The notes under the pieces were generated by a model that searched no databases, was not told the origin of the DNA, and was given only the letters and a program-made list of their open reading frames with translations. This document shows positions 2,245 through 27,345 of a stretch of 64,000 bases of DNA, piece by piece; positions within the stretch are counted from its first letter, which is position 1, and each line of letters opens with the position of its first letter. Both the position numbers and the translations under genes were made by a program. Where the stretch lies: the sequence record OP123707.1; one strand, written 5' to 3'.

Positions 2245-4524
2245 ATGACTACTACAATTGAAAGTAATTTAAATCACCCTATCGAACTCACTATTAAACG
2301 TGACGATGATCAACCGGATAGTACAGTTGTCACAAATCCTGATGGTAGTTGGGAAATGGACATTGGTCCCGTGGCGACATCCAGAAAAGTAAAATTCAGC
2401 TTTTATCATGGTGAGCAAAAAGCGGGCGAGCATTCGATTAGCTTCATCAATGCTCCCGTAAGCGCGGAAATATTGTCTGGGGCTTACCCAGTCATGGCCT
2501 TTGACCAAGAAGCCACCATCACTTACCAATTAAAAGATGCAGACGGTAACAACTACGTCGGTAGTGAAGGTGAATTTATTAAGATCGAATCTGTTGAGTC
2601 GGGTTACGTCCATCTTGATATTCCAATTCCAACAAATGGCATCATCGAGATACCGTGGAGTAAAACAAGTGTGGGCAGCGAAACTCACGTTTTAAAGAAC
2701 GGTCAAGATGGGACTTTAAACGAATACACTAACGAGTACGTCGTGGTGGGTGACTTGGGTTTCATGTATCATGACGAAGATCCTAAGTTAGGTGAACCCT
2801 GGACACTTTTTGGTTATGCGATGGACCGCAATGATGTTCCAATCGCTGGACTACCTATTCATGTGTACTCTTTAACCGAAGAATACCCGTATGACGAAAC
2901 ACTGACCACCGATGAGAGAGGATTAATTTCGATACTCCTGGATCCTCCGGAATCGTCAGAAGAGTTTGATGTTGAGTTAGAAATGTCAGCGGCTGGACAA
3001 ACTGATGATGTTTATTTAACGTGGGCGGATTATAATGACGGCGCACGTGGCTTCGTTGAACTGGACCCAACTCCTTCTGAAGTTGCTGAAGCTGATGGCA
3101 TCACTTTAACAGGCGTGGTTAAAGATGAAGGTGGTAACCCAATTCCTAATGGGAGGGTGCATTTTTATCGACTTGACCCAGGAAATAGTATTTATCACAA
3201 TGATACTTACACCACGGACGGGGATGGTCGATTTTCATTCGACACTTGGATCGATATGGGTAAGCAAACGTTTTTTATGGCAACGGATGAACATTTTGTT
3301 GCCAGAGACATTGCTGGGTTTGTTTCCCCTGAAATGGACATGCTTCAGTTGGGTGGGATTACTTTACCTTACCTTAAAGACTCTAAGGTCTCTGTTATTT
3401 ACCGAGATAAATTTGGTAACCTGGAAGCTGGGAAAACCATTACTTTTAGATACGACAGCGACACAGGACCCATCGCAGGAACGGTAGTTACTGACGAAAA
3501 TGGGTTGGCAGAATATCCGCTGGTGTGGGACGAAGTCCAAGACCACACGAAAATCTATGCCATCAGTGATGCGGATACTGGTGTTTCGATTATTGAAAAG
3601 GCTTCGATTAATGAAGTGGTTCCTGAGAACTTAAAAATAATCAATGCACCAGCTCGTTTACACCCTTATCAGAAAGCCTTCGTTTCAGGGTTTCTTATGG
3701 GGTCGGATGGGAAGCCATATAAAGTCCCCACTCAAATTAAAAATCATTGGGATGATTTTAATTGGACTGGGAGCACGGAAAGTGACGCGGACGGTTACTT
3801 TGAAATTAGCTTTAATCCGATGGAGTCCACGTCAGAAGACGGGAGTGAATACTTCTTAGGTATTAATCAGGGCATGTCACGCATTAAAATCGCGTGGGAT
3901 GACGGTAAAGCAGGCAGTTACCAAAGATTCAGATTCGACGCTCCTGATTTTCCAAATGGTATTGGACCATCACAAACGATCACACTGAATGGTAAAATGC
4001 GAGATGATATGTGGAACGTCCCACCGTTCTATGAAAGTGGGGCGTTGAAACTGATCGCTAAAGTTTACGTGGATGGCGATGAGTTATCAAGTCACAATGG
4101 TACTGTGAGGTCGGATGGAACCTTCATCATGGATATCACCACCCCGGCAACTATGGGGATGTTCGAGGTCTGGCTGACTACCGAAGACGGTAACCATGCC
4201 GACCGCATACCTTTATGGGTAGGTGGGCCAATGACGAAATCTTTGACCTTTACTAGACCGACTCCAGAGACCCTTCCACCTAATACCACTTACATTGATG
4301 TGGCGGGATATTTCAGAGATGAAAATAATCAACCTATTGTTAACCAATTTGTGACGATCTATGTGGAAGACCCACGATTCCCATACCCATCAGTAAGGGG
4401 GTCTGGTATCACGGATGAAGATGGTTTCTTTAGTACACAAATCTTTAATGGGGTTCCGGGTGACGTTAAAATTACAATCACTGCCGAACGTTATGAGGCA
4501 TCACACCTGATTACCGTCGTATAA
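2245..4524 (+). CDS. Tandem Ig-like repeat protein (759 aa)
   Basis: SD AGGA upstream. Repeats such as LKDADGNNY, VKDEGGNPIPNG...TDGDGRF and FRDENNQPIVN...TDEDGFF. Confidence 0.65.
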   Translation: MTTTIESNLNHPIELTIKRDDDQPDSTVVTNPDGSWEMDIGPVATSRKVKFSFYHGEQKAGEHSISFINAPVSAEILSGAYPVMAFDQEATITYQLKDADGNNYVGSEGEFIKIESVESGYVHLDIPIPTNGIIEIPWSKTSVGSETHVLKNGQDGTLNEYTNEYVVVGDLGFMYHDEDPKLGEPWTLFGYAMDRNDVPIAGLPIHVYSLTEEYPYDETLTTDERGLISILLDPPESSEEFDVELEMSAAGQTDDVYLTWADYNDGARGFVELDPTPSEVAEADGITLTGVVKDEGGNPIPNGRVHFYRLDPGNSIYHNDTYTTDGDGRFSFDTWIDMGKQTFFMATDEHFVARDIAGFVSPEMDMLQLGGITLPYLKDSKVSVIYRDKFGNLEAGKTITFRYDSDTGPIAGTVVTDENGLAEYPLVWDEVQDHTKIYAISDADTGVSIIEKASINEVVPENLKIINAPARLHPYQKAFVSGFLMGSDGKPYKVPTQIKNHWDDFNWTGSTESDADGYFEISFNPMESTSEDGSEYFLGINQGMSRIKIAWDDGKAGSYQRFRFDAPDFPNGIGPSQTITLNGKMRDDMWNVPPFYESGALKLIAKVYVDGDELSSHNGTVRSDGTFIMDITTPATMGMFEVWLTTEDGNHADRIPLWVGGPMTKSLTFTRPTPETLPPNTTYIDVAGYFRDENNQPIVNQFVTIYVEDPRFPYPSVRGSGITDEDGFFSTQIFNGVPGDVKITITAERYEASHLITVV

Positions 4525-4540
4525 CACAAAAAACTCAATT

Positions 4541-4563
4541 TGATGAGGGAACCCCCCTCATCA
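4541..4563 (+). terminator. Intrinsic terminator
   Basis: TGATGAGGG/CCCTCATCA stem followed by TTTTT. Confidence 0.75.
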
Positions 4564-4665
4564 TTTTTCAATAACATGAGTATAGTCTCAGGTAATCGAT
4601 GGGACTGCTGTTGCTTAGAGGGTACACAATGAAGTAGTAGTAATATAACACAAAAGGAAACAGAC

Positions 4666-7227
4666 ATGGCAGGATTAGTAAAAGGGGCCTTATTAGAAGG
4701 CAGTGTTAAATACATCCCTGACGAGCCTTTAACGTTGGTGTTGAAACGAGATGACGGTGAACCTGATGTCAACGTGGTCACTGATGACCAAGGTGCTTGG
4801 AAAGTGTTGGTCGGATCGTTAAACCCAGGCGTGGTAAACTTTACGTTTTACCTAGATGGTGTGTCGTTGGGCTCCAATGCAATTAACTTTGTTACTTGTA
4901 CTGGGATTCAATACTTACCATTCTCGGATGACCGTTTGCCACAAGGTCACGACGCTCACGTTTATGTTGTGGTGTTGGATGGTGCGGGTGAACGTCTTGC
5001 TGGCGCTGGTGTTGAGTTTAAGAACGAAGACACTGGTGAGTCGCTGGGTACGGGTGTAACCGATCACTTGGGGATTGCTGATGTAGTCATTCCAGGTTTG
5101 GAAGCACCGGGTTCACTCAATGTGAAGACCAGTAGCGGGGCATTCTCTGCGTCAGGCACAATCACATGGCATGACGGAACTGAAGCCACTCCAATGGACG
5201 TGAAGGAATTCGCGTACACCACGGAAGTGAACTCTGCGTTAGCGGGTACGATTGTAGGTCGTGTGGTGGATCAAAATGATCAACCGGTAGAAAACGCAAC
5301 ATTCGAACTTTATGACTTGGATGACTTAGCGGCAAATACCATCGACCTTTACACTCATCCAGGGGATTGGGTGCAACACACCGTACCGGTTGAAACCGAA
5401 GGCACTCACGAGTACATGGCTTACGTTGGCGGTGTTAAACGTCGCGTTACTATGGACTGGGGTGCTGGTTATGAAAACGTGGTTCCTGTAACAGCTGAGT
5501 TGTTATCAGACATCGACTGTATCTTCCCTTACGACGCTGCACCGGTTCTTAAGTATGCGCTTAAAGATGGTGACGGTAATAGTATCGGTAGTGCTGGCTT
5601 CGAGTTTTGTCGTATCGGTGAAACGTGGGATGGTTGGTCGCGTAACACCATGAGTGGCCCAGACGGTATCGTTACCGCACCGTTGAGCTGGCGTGTGATC
5701 ACAAGCCGTACGTTTAACCTCAGAAGTAATGTGGGGAACACTACGTTGTGGTCTTCTCAGATCTTCTTTGATGCGGTGAAGGGTCCAGTGGAAGCGTGGA
5801 AGACTCAAAACCCTAAAGTCAATGAAGCGGGTAAACTTGGGTTTGTTATCCGAGACATGAACGACCGTCCAATTGACGGTAAGATGTATGTCAAGCTTTT
5901 GGAAACAACCCCAGGGAACATCAACTCTGTTGAAGCTAAGAGTAATGAGTTTGGCGTGGTGGAATTCACAGTTCCTTATGTCGATGGGTTCGATAATCGT
6001 ACATTCAAGGCAATCATCCCGGGTGCAGCTGAAGCCGATGCTTCACTTACTTGGGTAAATGATGCGAGCTTAGTTCCTACCACGATCAACGTAGATCCAC
6101 TGGGTGCGGAGTTCGACCAAACAGTGGGTGTGACGATTACTGGTACGTTGTTGGATCAAAACGGTGACCCGATTGCGGGAGCGATCACGGTTTACGATTC
6201 GGTGCGAAAAGGTAGCGTTGTAGAAAACACTAACCCTGACGGAACGTTCAGTTTCGTTTACAATGGGGAACGTGGACAACACCACTTATTCATCCAGTCT
6301 GGTAATGCAGTTGTTGAGCACCGATTCCTTGGTAAGGGTGTGCGTACTTTGGAATTCATTCCAGGCACAACCGAAGTCATTCCTTACAACTCATTCGCGT
6401 ACTTCGCAACACGAGTTCGTGATGAGTATGGTAATGACATTCCTAGCTCCAACATCCAGTACTTCTGGGATGCGGAGTTAACGGAAGCCGCTGGTTCGGT
6501 GGGCACGTTCAGTAAACGCGTTTCTAAACTCAACGTATCTTGGTCTAACTCGAATGGACGTTCTGAGATCTATGCGGTGTTTGAAGATCTTGTAGCTTCT
6601 CATTCGTTCACTCGTACTGCTGCGCTGGAAGACTTGAACTACAAAGTTTTGGTCTCTAAGAACTCGTCTTACTTACCTCCTCGTAACATGGGTCATATCG
6701 GCGGGATCATTTCGAATAATGCTGGTGTTCCTATTTCAGATCCATTCACCATCAGAATCTACGATCCAGTCGCGGATACTTTGGATGTATACGACAATGT
6801 CCTGGATGCGAATGGTCGCTTTAAGGTTCCTATTCTTCCTAAGAAACACGACAGCAACCGTAAGTTGTATGTTTCGTTTGGTGGGATCTTATGGGAAATG
6901 AGTATGGAATACGACCACACCAACTGGATGGAACCTTACGGGGAAGCGGTCTTAGATCCTATTCCGGACATCACAGCCAACGTTGCGTTTGACATCACCG
7001 GTACGATGAAGAACCAAGATGGTAGTGCGTGGACAGGATCCGGCGGGAACCTATTGATGCGAGTTGAAATTTATCAAGGTGGTTCTTACTTAGGTAATAA
7101 GTCTGGGTACGTCGGGGAAGATGGTCGATTCACTATCAGTCCAACAATTACTGCCGCTGGTAACTACCAGCTATGGTTAATGACTTCCGACAGTGATTTC
7201 TTTGAAATTATTGACGTGACAGTTTAA
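4666..7227 (+). CDS. Tandem Ig-like repeat protein (853 aa)
   Basis: SD AAGGA upstream. Repeats VLDGAGERLAGA...TDHLG, VVDQNDQPVEN, LLDQNGDPIAG...NPDGTF and VRDEYGNDIP. Confidence 0.65.
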   Translation: MAGLVKGALLEGSVKYIPDEPLTLVLKRDDGEPDVNVVTDDQGAWKVLVGSLNPGVVNFTFYLDGVSLGSNAINFVTCTGIQYLPFSDDRLPQGHDAHVYVVVLDGAGERLAGAGVEFKNEDTGESLGTGVTDHLGIADVVIPGLEAPGSLNVKTSSGAFSASGTITWHDGTEATPMDVKEFAYTTEVNSALAGTIVGRVVDQNDQPVENATFELYDLDDLAANTIDLYTHPGDWVQHTVPVETEGTHEYMAYVGGVKRRVTMDWGAGYENVVPVTAELLSDIDCIFPYDAAPVLKYALKDGDGNSIGSAGFEFCRIGETWDGWSRNTMSGPDGIVTAPLSWRVITSRTFNLRSNVGNTTLWSSQIFFDAVKGPVEAWKTQNPKVNEAGKLGFVIRDMNDRPIDGKMYVKLLETTPGNINSVEAKSNEFGVVEFTVPYVDGFDNRTFKAIIPGAAEADASLTWVNDASLVPTTINVDPLGAEFDQTVGVTITGTLLDQNGDPIAGAITVYDSVRKGSVVENTNPDGTFSFVYNGERGQHHLFIQSGNAVVEHRFLGKGVRTLEFIPGTTEVIPYNSFAYFATRVRDEYGNDIPSSNIQYFWDAELTEAAGSVGTFSKRVSKLNVSWSNSNGRSEIYAVFEDLVASHSFTRTAALEDLNYKVLVSKNSSYLPPRNMGHIGGIISNNAGVPISDPFTIRIYDPVADTLDVYDNVLDANGRFKVPILPKKHDSNRKLYVSFGGILWEMSMEYDHTNWMEPYGEAVLDPIPDITANVAFDITGTMKNQDGSAWTGSGGNLLMRVEIYQGGSYLGNKSGYVGEDGRFTISPTITAAGNYQLWLMTSDSDFFEIIDVTV

Positions 7228-19517: not shown

Positions 19518-19618
19518 GGGTGATTTACTGGGCTCTGATATAGGGCTCAGTAATTTAAAACTAAGTTATATGTATTATATGTTACAAAAACCTTTTTCTC
19601 ACTCTTTTTTTTCCTACT

Positions 19619-19745
19619 CTAAAATGACGCTTAAAAACGCATTTTAGGGAGGGGTTTGGGGTGGGTTCTAGGTCATGGGGTGGGTTCGTAGGTCAAGTTT
19701 AGTCAAGTTGAGAAAGAGTCAAGTTGAAGAAAGTTAAGTCAAGTT
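19619..19745 (+). repeat. Intergenic repeat cluster: inverted repeat, G-tracts, 2x GGGGTGGGTTC(G)TAGGTCA and 4x GTCAAGTT
   Basis: Read directly. GTCAAGTT at 19692, 19702, 19718 and 19738; G-rich repeat units at 19658 and 19677. Confidence 0.8.
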
Positions 19746-19995
19746 TAAAAGATTTAAAAGGGAAAGAAGGTTAGAATTATTTTAATTATTTATCTAGTAA
19801 TAGTTAGCATAGCGAACGATACTCGTAGAGGAGAGTTCTAGCGGAGCTATACCAGTTTACTTATTTTTTATTTACATTTTGATTAAAGATCGTAATAACT
19901 TAAGATTAGAGTTCTTAGAAAGAGAATTCTAATGAGTAAGAGCTTATACTGCTTTTTAAATATTTATTAAACCTTAACAGAGAAAGGAAATTATC

Positions 19996-23799: not shown

Positions 23800-24936
23800 A
23801 TGTCCATAGCACTACCATTGAGCAATGATCCAATCGTCACCAAAGCGATGAACCTCATCAGTCGTGATTATTTAAAGCTGCCATTGAGTTCTAACTTAGC
23901 GGAACGCATGGGCTTGAAACCAAATCAATTACGTCATCGTTTTGCTAATGATGGATTAGAGACCCCAAAACACTATTTAGGGAAAGTTAGGGTCGCTTAT
24001 GTAAGGAACCAACTGAAATCCACCAATCGATCCATTCAAGAGATCGCTCAGTCGATGGGGTATGAAGAAGAACATCAATTCCGCAATTGGTACCGAAGCA
24101 ACACCGGGATCACACCAATCAAAGAACGGACCTTAGCACAACTGGAGTCGGAGAACATAGAGACACGCCCAGAGCAAATGGACACCATCATTGATGAACT
24201 CAAAGCCCATATCGATGCCAACTTCACCACCTTAACTCAGGTGGAGTCTTTTATGGATCAATACCTGATGAGCAACGTAGCGATACGCCGTTCATTTAAA
24301 CGAACTCATAAACTGTACCCACGCGAGTATTTGATCAAAACTCAGTGTGAGTATGTTGCGAGGCGCATTCGTAAGGATGGTTGGTTTAAACAAGAAATCT
24401 TGAAACACGTGAAACATGGACAGATTACCGGGTTCAATCGCATGTTCAAGAAATACTACAACGTGAGTGTGTACGACTACGGTAAAACAAACACCTTGGG
24501 ATTCGCAGTGACCGTCAACGGAACCAAACGTTGGTTGACGCAAACTTTAGTGGACCAGATTTTAGAACACCTGGCGGACGAAGTCTTTACGGATCATCAA
24601 TCGATCACTGACATTCGAAAGTTTTACGGTATTCATTATGAGAACTGGACTAAGTTGTTTGAAAGTACCGTCGGTATGAATGCACGACACACTTATCGTG
24701 GGATCGAGTATGAAGCAGCACTTCACTTGATCCAACACACGAGTTGGAACATCGAACGCATTATCGACACCGTGACGTCTGGTAAGCGTTCCAACTTTAA
24801 CGCCCGTTTTAAAGAGTACTTCGGATTGACGCCAATCGAAGCCAGACGCTACCCAGAACGTGTGATGCGTTTACAGGACACTGAGCAATTGGTGAAGTAC
24901 ATGAAAGTTGGCTTACAAAACTTAGAAATTAATTAA
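23800..24936 (+). CDS. Protein of three tandem AraC/XylS-type DNA-binding domains (378 aa)
   Basis: Three ~100-aa units ending FRNWYRSNTGITP, FNRMFKKYYNVSV and FNARFKEYFGLTP. SD AAGGA before ATG 23800. Confidence 0.85.
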   Translation: MSIALPLSNDPIVTKAMNLISRDYLKLPLSSNLAERMGLKPNQLRHRFANDGLETPKHYLGKVRVAYVRNQLKSTNRSIQEIAQSMGYEEEHQFRNWYRSNTGITPIKERTLAQLESENIETRPEQMDTIIDELKAHIDANFTTLTQVESFMDQYLMSNVAIRRSFKRTHKLYPREYLIKTQCEYVARRIRKDGWFKQEILKHVKHGQITGFNRMFKKYYNVSVYDYGKTNTLGFAVTVNGTKRWLTQTLVDQILEHLADEVFTDHQSITDIRKFYGIHYENWTKLFESTVGMNARHTYRGIEYEAALHLIQHTSWNIERIIDTVTSGKRSNFNARFKEYFGLTPIEARRYPERVMRLQDTEQLVKYMKVGLQNLEIN

Positions 24937-24949
24937 AGGCTTAAGAACA

Positions 24950-25666
24950 ATGCAACAAGATTTTAAACAATCACTTTTAGAAAGCACCGTCCAGTGGGTC
25001 CACAACAACTACCATCGACCAATTAAGGTAGGGGACATCCACCACCAAATGGGGTTGTCTGCTCCTCTGGTCACATATTTGTTTAAAGCACGTTTCAAGA
25101 TCACCCCAGGAACGTACCTCCGTAACTACCGAATGATGAAGGCTCACGAACACATTCGCCAAGGGGTTAAACCTACGGTGGCGTGTGAACGTACTGGGTA
25201 CACCAGTTACCACGCGTTTTGTCGAGTGTACAAAGTCCATTACGGGTTAACCCCATCGGAACATTCTCGACGTTTCCGTAACATGGAAGTCCAGACGGAA
25301 AGCTACGCTAACAGCATCATGAACAAGGAGTTCCCGGAAAGCCTTCGTGCTCGCATCATTGATTACGTGGTTGAGAACATCAAGCACAACCAAAACTTAC
25401 GTAAGTTGGAGAAACACTTCAATCTTCGGTTTGGGAGTTTGGGTCCTATGTTCGAGTATTTTTATAACTTGACATATTACGATTGGCGCAAGAAGATGCG
25501 CATGGAGAAGGTCAATGAGTTAATCCGTAACGACCCTCACATGGATCTTAAATCACTCCCAGCGACGTTAGGGATTTGCAGTTATCACTATCTAAACACG
25601 TTGTACCAAGCACACTACGGTATGACGATTGGTCAGTACGCTTACAAACAAAAGAGAATGGTCTAA
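24950..25666 (+). CDS. Protein of two tandem AraC-type DNA-binding domains (238 aa)
   Basis: Units ...YLRNYRM...TGYTSYHAFCRVYKVHYGLTPSE and ...KMRMEK...LGICSYHYLNTLYQAHYGMT. Confidence 0.85.
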   Translation: MQQDFKQSLLESTVQWVHNNYHRPIKVGDIHHQMGLSAPLVTYLFKARFKITPGTYLRNYRMMKAHEHIRQGVKPTVACERTGYTSYHAFCRVYKVHYGLTPSEHSRRFRNMEVQTESYANSIMNKEFPESLRARIIDYVVENIKHNQNLRKLEKHFNLRFGSLGPMFEYFYNLTYYDWRKKMRMEKVNELIRNDPHMDLKSLPATLGICSYHYLNTLYQAHYGMTIGQYAYKQKRMV

Positions 25667-26370
25667 TGAAAAACATGGAAGTTTTTAAGTTCATCGAACA
25701 AGCGATCGAAGCAAATTATCGTGATCTAAAGGCAAGTGGGAAAGTCTGTCAGGCCACCGCAATGAGTCGTAACCAGATTAATGCGGTGTTAGCACGTCTA
25801 GGAAAGCCGACCCTGAAACAACTGATCGTAAATAAGCGCGTGATCGTTGCTAAGGAGCTCCTAGACAAAGGAACGGTGAAAGCCAAAGTCTTACACACCA
25901 AAGTAGGATACGGTACGTACAAAGGGCTTAGAGAGGCGTTTGTGCAAGCTTACGGAGTTACCCCAAGTTTTTATGAGATGAGTCCTAAGACTAAGCTCCA
26001 GAATAAAAACGAAAAGCAAACTCCTCCGGAGTTCACCCAACCGTTTCAGTATGAAGTCAATAAGTACATTCTGAAACATTTCGTGGATAAGGGGATTACT
26101 GTTCATGATGTGGCGAAGGAATTCAACACCACCAACGAGATGATTGAGAAAGTGTGTCAACACTATTACCATCGATCATTTGCGGACCGGGTATTACACC
26201 TTCGTTTGAACCGTGCCGCGGGTCAATTACACGGAACCCGCAAAGACCCAAAAACCATCGCTTCGAATGTTGGGTTTCTAACCTACCATTTCTTTGTAGT
26301 GAAATTCACGGAGATGTTTACGGTAGGACCTAAACGTTACCGGACCTTAGCTCGACTGAATGCGATTTAA
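25666..26370 (+). CDS. Protein of two tandem AraC-type DNA-binding domains (234 aa)
   Basis: TAATG overlap with the previous gene. Units ...VGYGTYKGLREAFVQAYGVTP and ...LRLNRA...VGFLTYHFFVVKFTEMFTVGPKRYR. Confidence 0.85.
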   Translation: MKNMEVFKFIEQAIEANYRDLKASGKVCQATAMSRNQINAVLARLGKPTLKQLIVNKRVIVAKELLDKGTVKAKVLHTKVGYGTYKGLREAFVQAYGVTPSFYEMSPKTKLQNKNEKQTPPEFTQPFQYEVNKYILKHFVDKGITVHDVAKEFNTTNEMIEKVCQHYYHRSFADRVLHLRLNRAAGQLHGTRKDPKTIASNVGFLTYHFFVVKFTEMFTVGPKRYRTLARLNAI

Positions 26371-26389
26371 TACTGAAAGGTAATGTTAT

Positions 26390-26907
26390 GTGAACAGAAA
26401 GTATTTTAGTGAAACCTCACTGGAGTATCCGAACAAATCAGGTGTATACCGCGAGATCTGTCAGTAGTGTGGATCTTCAAGTACTTCTGTTCACAATCTC
26501 ATCCTTTCACGGGGTGATACCAGATCAGTAGGTATAAAGCGCACGAATAATGTTCGGGGATGGCAATGGTTTGATTTTCATCCTTTTGTTTCCGGCTTCG
26601 ATGAGTAGCCGTTCCCGGACACCAAATGTTAATTCATGTATGTTGACGCATTGGTATCATGAGTTACATTAGACCCTTCTTCATTTAGCCGAGTGGATGA
26701 ACGGGTTGCTGTGTGAACAGCCGGCTAAGCTCTTTAAGACGAATAAGGTTCCTCCAGCCTTGCCCATCGTTTCCCTCATTAGAGAGTTTAGTTCGGGTGT
26801 TTCTTCCAGTAGGGAAGGCCAACCACTGCTTTCTTGGTGACATCTTTAGTTCTTAGGAACAAGATAGTTTCGCAGCAGCCGTTCTCCTAGGAGAACGGTA
26901 CTTTTTT
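26390..26907 (+). ncRNA. Candidate large structured non-coding RNA (~520 nt), family not recognised
   Basis: No credible ORF in a gene-dense genome. More than 12 helices found by eye, a terminal helix GTGAACAGAAAGTA/TACTTCTGTTCAC, a GNRA hairpin and a pseudoknot. Starts at the G of TATG and ends in a terminator. Confidence 0.7.
26878..26907 (+). terminator. Intrinsic terminator closing the candidate ncRNA
   Basis: GCCGTTCTC-ctag-GAGAACGGT then ACTTTTTT. Confidence 0.85.
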
Positions 26908-27051
26908 GCTTTTTCAATATTTTCATAAAAAAGTTCCAGAGCTCCTACAAGGCTCTCTAAGCTTCTTTAGCACTTTTATTATGTCTTATAAACTATAACT
27001 GCATTGCACATCTTCTAGGTGCCATACAAACGTTTTAACGATGGAAAGTTT

Positions 27052-27345
27052 ATGTCTAAAATCAAATTATCTTTGGTCGCGATTTGTTTATCCGACTTCG
27101 AGGACGTATTACCAAGCAGCGGTCAGGCAACGCAAGCCATAGGTTTGATTCAAGAAGCCCTTATCGACCTTGGTTATAACGTTCAACATGTGCATCAGGT
27201 GCAGGGGGACCCAACGACACTGTATCCTGTTCGCGCATATATCAAAAATGTCATTGTGGGGCAATCCAACGGAATACCAACGGACTCTAACGTCACTATC
27301 CGTATTGCCAACGCACAGTGTTACTCAGTCCTATTTTTTAAATAG
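27052..27345 (+). CDS. Hypothetical protein
   Basis: SD GGAAAG; first gene of a tightly coupled cluster. Confidence 0.55.
   Translation: MSKIKLSLVAICLSDFEDVLPSSGQATQAIGLIQEALIDLGYNVQHVHQVQGDPTTLYPVRAYIKNVIVGQSNGIPTDSNVTIRIANAQCYSVLFFK

Follow-up and report, generated by a model that had tools for sequence, protein, structure and literature searches.

The 64,000-nt stretch of DNA analyzed here (the window) matches Vibrio phage phiKT1028 (OP123707.1) with 100% identity and represents the terminal part of its 238.8-kb genome (window position = record position - 174838). This phiKZ-like jumbo phage (Tidunavirus, Gorgonvirinae), named 'Ariel' in the literature, is a nucleus-forming chimallivirus without the tubulin PhuZ (PMC11724907). 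Over the first 50 kb of the window, the widest intergenic gap (681 nt, 26371-27051; the runners-up are 478 and 304 nt) is free of annotation and bounded by the third of three AraC-like genes (25666-26370) and by a gene for a 97-aa protein (27052-27345). A preliminary description had singled out within it a stretch free of open reading frames (ORFs), 26390-26907, bounded by a TATG and a strong terminator, as a highly structured RNA. Our analysis makes us confident that this stretch, read on the plus strand, is a real and independently evolving structured noncoding RNA (ncRNA) gene of a new family. Its boundaries (TATG at 26387-26390, terminator at 26878-26907) and its noncoding nature held up, whereas the gap itself proved to run on to 27051, its final 144 nt lying outside the RNA. 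The RNA adjoins the PhuZ site, the DNA polymerase gene lies 3 kb downstream, and the other neighbors encode AraC-like helix-turn-helix (HTH) proteins and unannotated small proteins. The features of the locus are collected in Table 1.

Table 1. Features of the RNA gene and its flanks in the phiKT1028 window
Feature	Position	Strand	Basis
Whole noncoding RNA gene, 518 nt	26390..26907	+	fold z, syntenic copies, covariation, no conserved ORF, no Rfam match
Promoter block GGTAATGTTATG, proposed +1 at G26390	26376..26390	+	conserved block with TATG
5' domain, 105 nt, closed by helix P1	26390..26494	+	P1 kept with differing sequences
Near-invariant motif GGUGUAUACCGC within the 5' domain: hairpin GGU-GUAU-ACC, then GC	26441..26452	+	invariant alignment columns
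Two small hairpins (UCAUCCU/GGGGUGA; UACC/GGUA), then single-stranded UAUAAAGCGCA (26533-26543)	26499..26543	+	segment folds, alignment
Hairpin H2b (CGAAU/GUUCG), phiKT1028-specific hairpin GGGGAUGG../..CAUCCUU, hairpin H3	26544..26619	+	segment folds of homologues
GACACC, candidate 5' strand of a long-range helix with GGUGUU (26796-26801)	26618..26623	+	RNAalifold, Tidunavirus group
Hairpins H4 (26625-26670) and H5 (26672-26707)	26625..26707	+	folds; both-side changes in Tidunavirus-group helices 12-14
Conserved core: small hairpin GCUGU-GUGA-ACAGC (26708-26721), then long hairpin	26708..26801	+	covariation in both genera
Variable 3' region	26802..26877	+	segment folds of homologues
Intrinsic terminator: 9-10 bp G+C-rich stem (26878-26899) and U6 (26902-26907)	26878..26907	+	hairpin and U-run
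Non-RNA flank: AT-rich box, TATG promoter-like site, relic of the PhuZ-97aa spacer	26908..27051	+	spacer alignment

Folding, coding potential and distribution

The phiKT1028 RNA has a minimum free energy (MFE) of -168.5 kcal/mol as compared with -139.0 ± 6.9 kcal/mol for 100 dinucleotide shuffles, none of which was as good (z -4.3). This folding above chance, expected for the proposed RNA, goes in the same direction in five homologues (plus-strand z from -4.7 to -8.1, the minus strand being weaker in every case). The minus strand of 26390-26907 reached z -1.9, and two other long gaps of the window -1.15 and -1.67. An excess of G-U pairs, which had been taken to favor an RNA on the plus strand, recurs in the consensus structures, where G-U cells outnumber A-C cells by 67:9 and 69:8. 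The consensus energy is likewise better on the plus than on the minus strand (-76.8 vs -61.0 and -120.6 vs -102.2).

A six-frame comparison of all homologues revealed no conserved ORF or frame: the longest ATG ORFs (37-68 aa) differ between phages, and similarity extends over all frames on both strands. In phiKT1028 itself the stretch holds short ORFs of 40-52 aa. A coding gene or pseudogene was therefore rejected, as the ORFs differ and the frames shift between homologues.

A DNA-level search returned phiKT1028 itself as the only match. The search with flanking proteins led to pTD1, VP4B, phiKT1019, 2 TSL-2019, 5 TSL-2019, USC-1, PDCC-1 and Aphrodite1 (all other Gorgonvirinae), in each of which an ORF-free gap of 498-656 nt follows directly after the third AraC-like gene. 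Each of the 9 distinct lineages available for Gorgonvirinae has a single copy of the RNA at this site, with the third AraC-like gene on one side and the PhuZ/97-aa gene block on the other in every case. The copies are 428-572 nt long and share 56-75% identity between lineages (56-65% for the phiKT1028 copy with the others), each extending from TATGT(G/A) to a hairpin with T6-7, followed by GC or GT. One new lineage, VP4B-like and diverged, came from Logan assemblies, through the contigs of 8 clusters obtained by a search of 5.8 billion proteins. A profile of neighboring proteins run against IMG/VR recovered known genomes only; a core-motif scan of IMG/VR gave known genomes and 6 chance matches without the hairpin; and two different motif patterns applied to metagenome and GTDB genome collections yielded either no matches or chance matches in coding DNA of Clostridia. 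Our covariance model (R1) scores 103.8 bits on the phiKT1028 core and finds a single copy per genome in the fetched loci. In all of these searches the RNA family was confined to Gorgonvirinae (Tidunavirus and Aphroditevirus), nucleus-forming jumbo phages of Vibrio and Photobacterium.

Beyond this group, the PhuZ loci of RisingSun, KPN8, pAEv1810 and phiKZ gave no significant match with model R1, nhmmer or blastn. The Erwinia phage RisingSun does have a 656-nt ORF-free gap upstream of PhuZ (positions 4345-5000 of its locus) with a TATG and a terminator (z -2.2 on the plus strand vs -0.5 on the minus strand), and the Klebsiella phage KPN8 has about 1 kb upstream of PhuZ (3499-4478 of its locus) with small doubtful ORFs only. 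Short collinear matches connect the two gaps without reaching significance (E about 1-4), and homology to the Gorgonvirinae RNA was undetectable in either. By eye, CUGCUCACAAUCC and a UCGACCG loop are common to the RisingSun gap and the RNA, a likeness for which homology is not demonstrable.

Architecture of the RNA and compensatory changes

All copies follow a common plan: a 5' domain closed by P1, variable middle hairpins, the core hairpin, the single-stranded CACUGCUUU and the terminator. Whole middle hairpins have been gained or lost between lineages around the invariant core. Such turnover of entire hairpins round a fixed core is also known from other large structured RNAs (RNase P, ROOL, GOLLD).

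Nearly all of the helices listed in the preliminary description reappear in the MFE or centroid fold, among them P1 (26390-26405/26480-26494), AGUGA/UCACU, GAUCU/GGAUC, UACC/GGUA, AAUGUUAAUUCAUG/CAUGAGUUACAUU (part of the H4 stem), ACCC../..GGGU, CUUCC/GGAAG and AUCUU-GUUC/GAAC-AAGAU. On the other hand, two of them (CATCCTT/GGGGATG and GCCTT/AAGGC) compete with other partners, CUGCU/AGCAG forms only when the 3' segment is folded in isolation, and GCUGU/ACAGC only in the Tidunavirus consensus fold.

P1 joins 26390-26399 with 26485-26494 and is extended in phiKT1028 to 26405/26480. Its sequence is distinct in each deep lineage with the pairing retained (GUGAACAGAA/UUCUGUUCAC in phiKT1028, GUGGUGAGA/UCUCACCAC in pTD1, GUGGGU/ACCCAC in VP4B, GUAAGCGA/UCGCUUAC in phiKT1019 and GUGAGCGGU/ACCGCUCAC in Aphroditevirus), and 8 of 14 predicted pairs have changed on both sides. 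Within the 5' domain, the GGU/ACC pairs of GGUGUAUACCGC are kept in 8/8 sequences. The downstream motif UAUAAAGCGCA is found in 7/9 lineages, the whole module, H2b included, being deleted in USC-1 and Aphrodite1. H2b and H3 keep their position in the homologues with stems unrelated in sequence (GGAAAGUAAG/CUUACUUUCU, CAGUCCAGAA/UUCUGGACUG, GGUUCAGGGG/CCCCUGAACC), and changes on both sides occur here in two helices of the Aphroditevirus group (6 and 7) and in one of the Tidunavirus group (9). In the phiKT1028 copy of H3, UCCGG (26591-26595) pairs with CCGGA (26615-26619) and UCGAUG lies at 26598-26603, the interior reading YCCYUUGU...UCGAUG across the family; the fold of the entire region 26544-26619 is ambiguous in phiKT1028 itself. 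Between H3 and H4 the family plan includes a short ACNCC segment. The candidate helix GACACC/GGUGUU (6 pairs, 100% paired in the Tidunavirus group, with changes from A-U to G-U only) competes with an extended core stem, AACAG/GGUGUU, of the MFE fold. USC-1 and Aphrodite1 lack H4, and three additional hairpins occupy the H4/H5 site in Aphroditevirus; the loop of H5 (26687-26693) reads AGCCGAG.

At the base of the long core hairpin the invariant AGCCGGCU (26719-26726) is paired with AGUUCGGGU (26790-26798), leaving U26792 bulged (the family consensus of this 3' strand is AGUUCGG(G/A)U), and the apex is variable. The 3' region that follows consists of hairpins that differ between lineages, such as CUUCC/GGAAG (26803-26817) and a phiKT1028-specific one at 26839-26869, and of the invariant CACUGCUUU (26824-26832), with CACUGC the same in all lineages.

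Two sets of short motifs in this framework deserve mention. USC-1 and Aphrodite1 have lost the UAUAAAGCGCA module, yet carry CUAAAGCC inside H3. Base pairing is possible between AAAGC(G) and the (U)GCUUU within the invariant CACUGCUUU, and a tertiary contact may thus have been re-supplied from another module; the motifs themselves do not vary. In addition, pyrimidine motifs resembling the 3' end of 16S rRNA (UCCUCC, UCCUCCUU), which could pair with Shine-Dalgarno sequences, sit in the apex of the core hairpin in pTD1, VP4B and the Logan relative and in H3 of USC-1 and Aphrodite1. VP4B and the Logan relative have two each, pTD1 one and a variant (UUCUCCUU), USC-1 and Aphrodite1 one, and phiKT1028 a weaker UUCCUCC at ~26751-26757.

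Compensatory changes were counted against two controls. The core hairpin, compared over both genera, comprises 16 pairs with no mismatch (2/112 cells are alignment gaps), 4 of them changed on both sides; its CCGG/UCGG part and the bulged U never vary. For the whole RNA, the Tidunavirus group gave 104 pairs with 90.5% of cells paired, 27 pairs being changed on both sides as compared with 8.5 ± 2.1 in the shuffled control (0/500 as high) and 4-10 with slid partners. The corresponding values for the Aphroditevirus group are 125 pairs, 94.4% of cells paired and 20 pairs changed on both sides, as compared with 9.3 ± 2.0 shuffled and 3-6 slid. Thus, copies in all related jumbo phages (Gorgonvirinae) bring compensatory changes well above both controls to the RNA first proposed for phiKT1028. 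MAFFT failed to align H3 across the genera because its stems have no sequence in common, so that comparison of the two genera supports H3, H4 and H5 only as whole helices.

These changes also bear on a reading of the stretch as a DNA-level element (an origin, a centromere-like site for PhuZ or a packaging site) or as a decayed gene with small ORFs. The location next to PhuZ and near the DNA polymerase gene would suit the former, and the short phiKT1028 ORFs the latter. We consider either highly improbable, as the compensatory changes preserve helices with many G-U pairs on one strand only, the stretch has the polarity of a promoter and a terminator, no tandem repeats or iterons were found in 26300-27100, the RNA persists without PhuZ, and the ORFs are unconserved, with frames shifting between homologues.

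The proposed transcription unit and its flanks

In phiKZ, late transcripts of the non-virion RNA polymerase (nvRNAP) start at the G of a TATG, which is necessary but not sufficient as a promoter (PMC4666361); the preliminary description was accurate on this point. TATGT(G/A) is invariant in all copies of the RNA, the G of TATG being the first base of P1 in every one of them, and a GTA(C)AT..TAT block upstream is conserved in all 9 lineages, the spacer that follows the AraC stop (16-28 nt) being otherwise variable. A start of the nvRNAP type at G26390 is thus suggested by comparison with phiKZ. Exact copies of T[AT]TTATATGT, likely the promoter consensus of phiKT1028, occur at 19573, 22660, 33517 and 43231, all of them intergenic, on the plus strand and upstream of genes. 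At the other end, the phiKT1028 terminator has 9 pairs (5 G-C), a 4-nt loop and T6; the hairpin with T6-7 is kept in all copies, and 4 pairs of the terminator helix (helix 18 of the Tidunavirus group) have changed on both sides.

The three AraC-like genes and the RNA lie on a single strand and have a single terminator in common. This arrangement raises the alternative that the RNA is a 3'-UTR (3' untranslated region) element of the AraC-like operon, that is, an mRNA stabilizer or a processed RNA with no promoter of its own. It agrees with the absence of a terminator between the AraC stop (26370) and the RNA and with the restriction of the AraC-like array and the RNA to the same phages. We nevertheless give this alternative little credence: TATGT(G/A) and the upstream block are invariant amid a variable spacer with their G as the first base of P1 in all copies, and a start site therefore fits better than a processing site. 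The two origins of the RNA, from its own promoter and by processing of a 3'-UTR, are not exclusive.

Downstream of the terminator, an AT-rich box (TTTTTTGCnTTTT.A.TATTTT, 26902-26926), conserved in both genera, may be an early (virion RNA polymerase) promoter. A promoter-like TTATTATGTC at 26976-26985 (TATG site 26980), a variant of T[AT]TTATATGT, lies ahead of the 97-aa gene. The 3' half of the spacer (~26990-27051) aligns with the PhuZ-97aa spacer of Aphrodite1, 2 TSL-2019, phiKT1019 and USC-1, including a hairpin around UCUUCUAGGUGCC, and 26908-27051 is therefore a scar of PhuZ loss rather than a part of the RNA. The PhuZ ORF is gone at this site in phiKT1028, pTD1, VP4B and the Logan relatives, all of which have kept the RNA intact. 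Since the RNA is conserved under structural constraint and has been retained despite the loss of the tubulin gene, a function maintained by selection is implied. As a separate observation, the RNA of pTD1, VP4B and the Logan relative contains CACTTATTATGT ahead of H3 (~6905-6917 of the pTD1 locus). This sequence resembles the promoter-like CACTTTTATTATGTC after the phiKT1028 terminator and may act as an internal start, from which a shorter RNA of the 3' part would arise.

The same flanks were considered for a cis-acting leader or attenuator, in which a signal-sensing RNA would control, in a riboswitch-like manner, read-through of the terminator into the PhuZ/97-aa block. The 3' end of the element is indeed a terminator, whose U-run ends only ~40 nt before the PhuZ start codon in Aphroditevirus and phiKT1019, and an AGGGAUG of Aphroditevirus could pair with the terminator 5' arm. 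That pairing, however, is matched by 29-34% of shuffled upstream sequences and is missing in phiKT1019. There is no conserved antiterminator: the best upstream partner site differs in each Tidunavirus and beats the shuffles only in phiKT1028 (p about 0.03), at a site that the others do not share. Moreover, the RNA is intact where PhuZ has been lost, the AT-rich box lies past the terminator in both genera and the downstream genes of phiKT1028 have a TATG site of their own (26980), and no riboswitch model of Rfam matches. The RNA is also, at 430-570 nt, far above the size of known aptamer leaders. Altogether we regard control of this kind as improbable.

Relation to known RNAs and possible mode of action

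No class could be assigned to the RNA at the outset, and this still stands after comparison with Rfam 15 (4227 models, including ROOL, GOLLD, HEARO, OLE, raiA, 6S, pRNA, RNase P, tmRNA, introns and riboswitches). There was no match at the gathering score in the whole window. At E<=10 nothing was found in the RNA, the sole hit in 26200-27100 being a 17.8-bit SAM-II on the minus strand outside it, and the RNA of 5 homologous loci had no match at E<=5. ARAGORN detected neither tRNA nor tmRNA genes in the 64-kb window, by which a tmRNA or tRNA-like RNA was rejected. A type III antitoxin (ToxI-like) was rejected for want of tandem repeats in 26300-27100, and a sponge for CsrA because the 8 GGA motifs in 518 nt (counted by eye) are not enriched over what we estimate from composition. 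Our literature search found no description of such an RNA, no structured RNA of such size for the nucleus-forming jumbo phages (Chimalliviridae) and no transcriptome of any Gorgonvirinae phage.

The RNA is a new family within the loosely defined 'large structured phage RNAs'. Among these, ROOL and GOLLD are large, ornate RNAs known from phages and prophages, of Firmicutes among others (classes from the Breaker laboratory, with cryo-EM work in 2024-25). The present RNA shares with them a length of several hundred nucleotides, a phage-borne and ORF-free locus, covarying helices and turnover of hairpins around a core. It differs in that their Rfam models are unmatched even at E<=10, in having no neighboring tRNA genes, and in belonging to a nucleus-forming jumbo phage of a Gram-negative host that has an RNA polymerase separate from that of the host and a TATG promoter.

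Transcriptomes of phiKZ and 201phi2-1 (ONT-cappable-seq and dRNA-seq) contain small RNAs (sRNAs) of <250 nt at other loci only. For 201phi2-1, a filter limited the candidates to units <250 bp, the majority of which originate from 5' UTRs, such as that of the tail gene gp182/gp277; for phiKZ, there is a single predicted sRNA of 75 nt (PMC11512511, PMC8244752). Those, like the RNA described here, are chimallivirus ncRNAs delimited by a phage promoter and a terminator, but they lie at other loci, and model R1 finds nothing in the PhuZ region of phiKZ.

A ribozyme, or a self-assembling multimeric RNA like ROOL and GOLLD, was weighed because of the core. Its invariant helix, in which G-C pairs flank a bulged U, resembles metal-binding helices such as RNase P P4 and group II domain 5. 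The sequence AGCCGGCU, a perfect palindrome of 8 nt, is constant despite the covariation of adjacent pairs, another palindrome (ACAUCGAUGU) occurs in H3 of Aphroditevirus, and the size and modular periphery of the RNA would fit as well. On the other hand, no known ribozyme or large-RNA model of Rfam matches, there is no evident substrate or cleavage site, pTD1 and VP4B do not preserve the H3 palindrome, and the whole case rests on resemblance, which leads us to view such a function as quite improbable.

The likeness to P4 is close at first sight: P4 of E. coli M1 RNA is AAG-U-CCGG / CCGG-CUU with a bulged U, and the core helix is AG-U-UCGG / CCGG-CU, similar in sequence and in bulge position. 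The core strands, however, form one simple hairpin in reversed strand order, whereas P4 is a pseudoknot between distant regions, and we take the resemblance to be coincidental. RNase P RNA was rejected accordingly (no model match, CR-I to CR-V absent and the P4-like helix a local hairpin), and sequence inspection rejected readings of the invariant motifs as RNase P P4, group II domain 5 or a k-turn.

As to the mode of action, we tentatively propose a protein-binding scaffold or decoy as the likeliest one, an assignment that we place somewhat short of an even chance. It is suggested by the nature of the invariant elements (a specific irregular helix and single-stranded motifs, as for recognition sites), by a periphery that is free to vary, by the insulation of the RNA from its neighbors and its survival of PhuZ loss, and by the lack of a conserved cis switch. 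The phage nvRNAP would transcribe the RNA inside the phage nucleus as a separate unit in middle or late infection, with the G of TATG as the start; the terminator and the promoter-like box would insulate this unit from the downstream genes. The RNA would then work in trans through its fold by binding one or more proteins, with the bulged-U helix and the invariant single-stranded motifs as contact sites and the variable hairpins as periphery. There are precedents for the binding of a protein machine in trans by a folded RNA, namely phi29 pRNA and 6S RNA, from which the present RNA differs by the absence of any sequence or structure similarity (no Rfam hit) and by a size 2.5-3 times larger. Taken as a whole, a stable ncRNA gene of a new family, transcribed by the nvRNAP and acting in trans, is in our judgment the best explanation of the locus and a reasonably probable one.

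Several points weigh against this explanation. A scaffold or decoy was reached by elimination, with nothing pointing to a partner protein, and we infer the 5' end, abundance and timing of the RNA from sequence. The promoter of the RNA is only a looser version of the exact T[AT]TTATATGT motif. No terminator separates the RNA from the AraC stop (26370), and transcripts of the AraC operon therefore end in the same sequence. The family comprises few members (9 lineages, ~5 deep branches), so that the compensatory counts rest on few events; the shuffle control for changes on both sides is not a probability; and the structures tested came from the very alignments used for testing. Finally, the middle part aligns unreliably between the two genera, and there are two mutually exclusive folds around the core.

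A broader and rather unlikely possibility is that nucleus-forming jumbo phages harbor a new class of large structured RNAs and that the RNA described here is its founding member, serving as a component of a ribonucleoprotein (RNP), a self-assembling RNA or a ribozyme. It would be made by the phage polymerase and act in or at the phage nucleus, e.g. in transcription, RNA export or host takeover, and diverged counterparts might then lie upstream of PhuZ in other chimalliviruses, e.g. in the RisingSun gap. Large structured ncRNAs are of a rare kind, and each new class has opened new biochemistry. In Chimalliviridae, non-canonical polymerases synthesize RNA within a protein-walled compartment, from which it must be exported. 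Should a protein of the phage or host prove to be a partner of the RNA described here, an additional level of regulation in phage-nucleus biology or in counter-defence might come to light. Even without a measurable effect the RNA provides a well-defined new Rfam family and an annotation fix for ~10 genomes, and it is testable, since the phages are in culture and phiKT1028 has already been studied.

Some minor observations concern the neighborhood. The three consecutive AraC-like genes (23800-26370) encode repeated HTH_18 DNA-binding domains only, with no sensor domain. The same three-gene array is present in the Gorgonvirinae relatives (by Pfam and the records of the relatives), and its last gene is restricted to Gorgonvirinae by tblastn, like the RNA; such an array is an odd cargo for a phage independent of the host RNA polymerase. 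The downstream 97-aa gene is unannotated in the records of VP4B (NC_042136; 5345-5635 of the locus) and Aphrodite1 (6187-6477 of the locus) and intact in both by tblastn. The 478-nt gap, which follows an HNH endonuclease gene and folds no better than shuffles (z -1.7), contains iteron-like direct repeats at 19658-19748 (GTCAAGTT in ~5 copies and GGGGTGGGTTC.TAGGTCA in 2 copies) and may be a protein-binding array or an origin.

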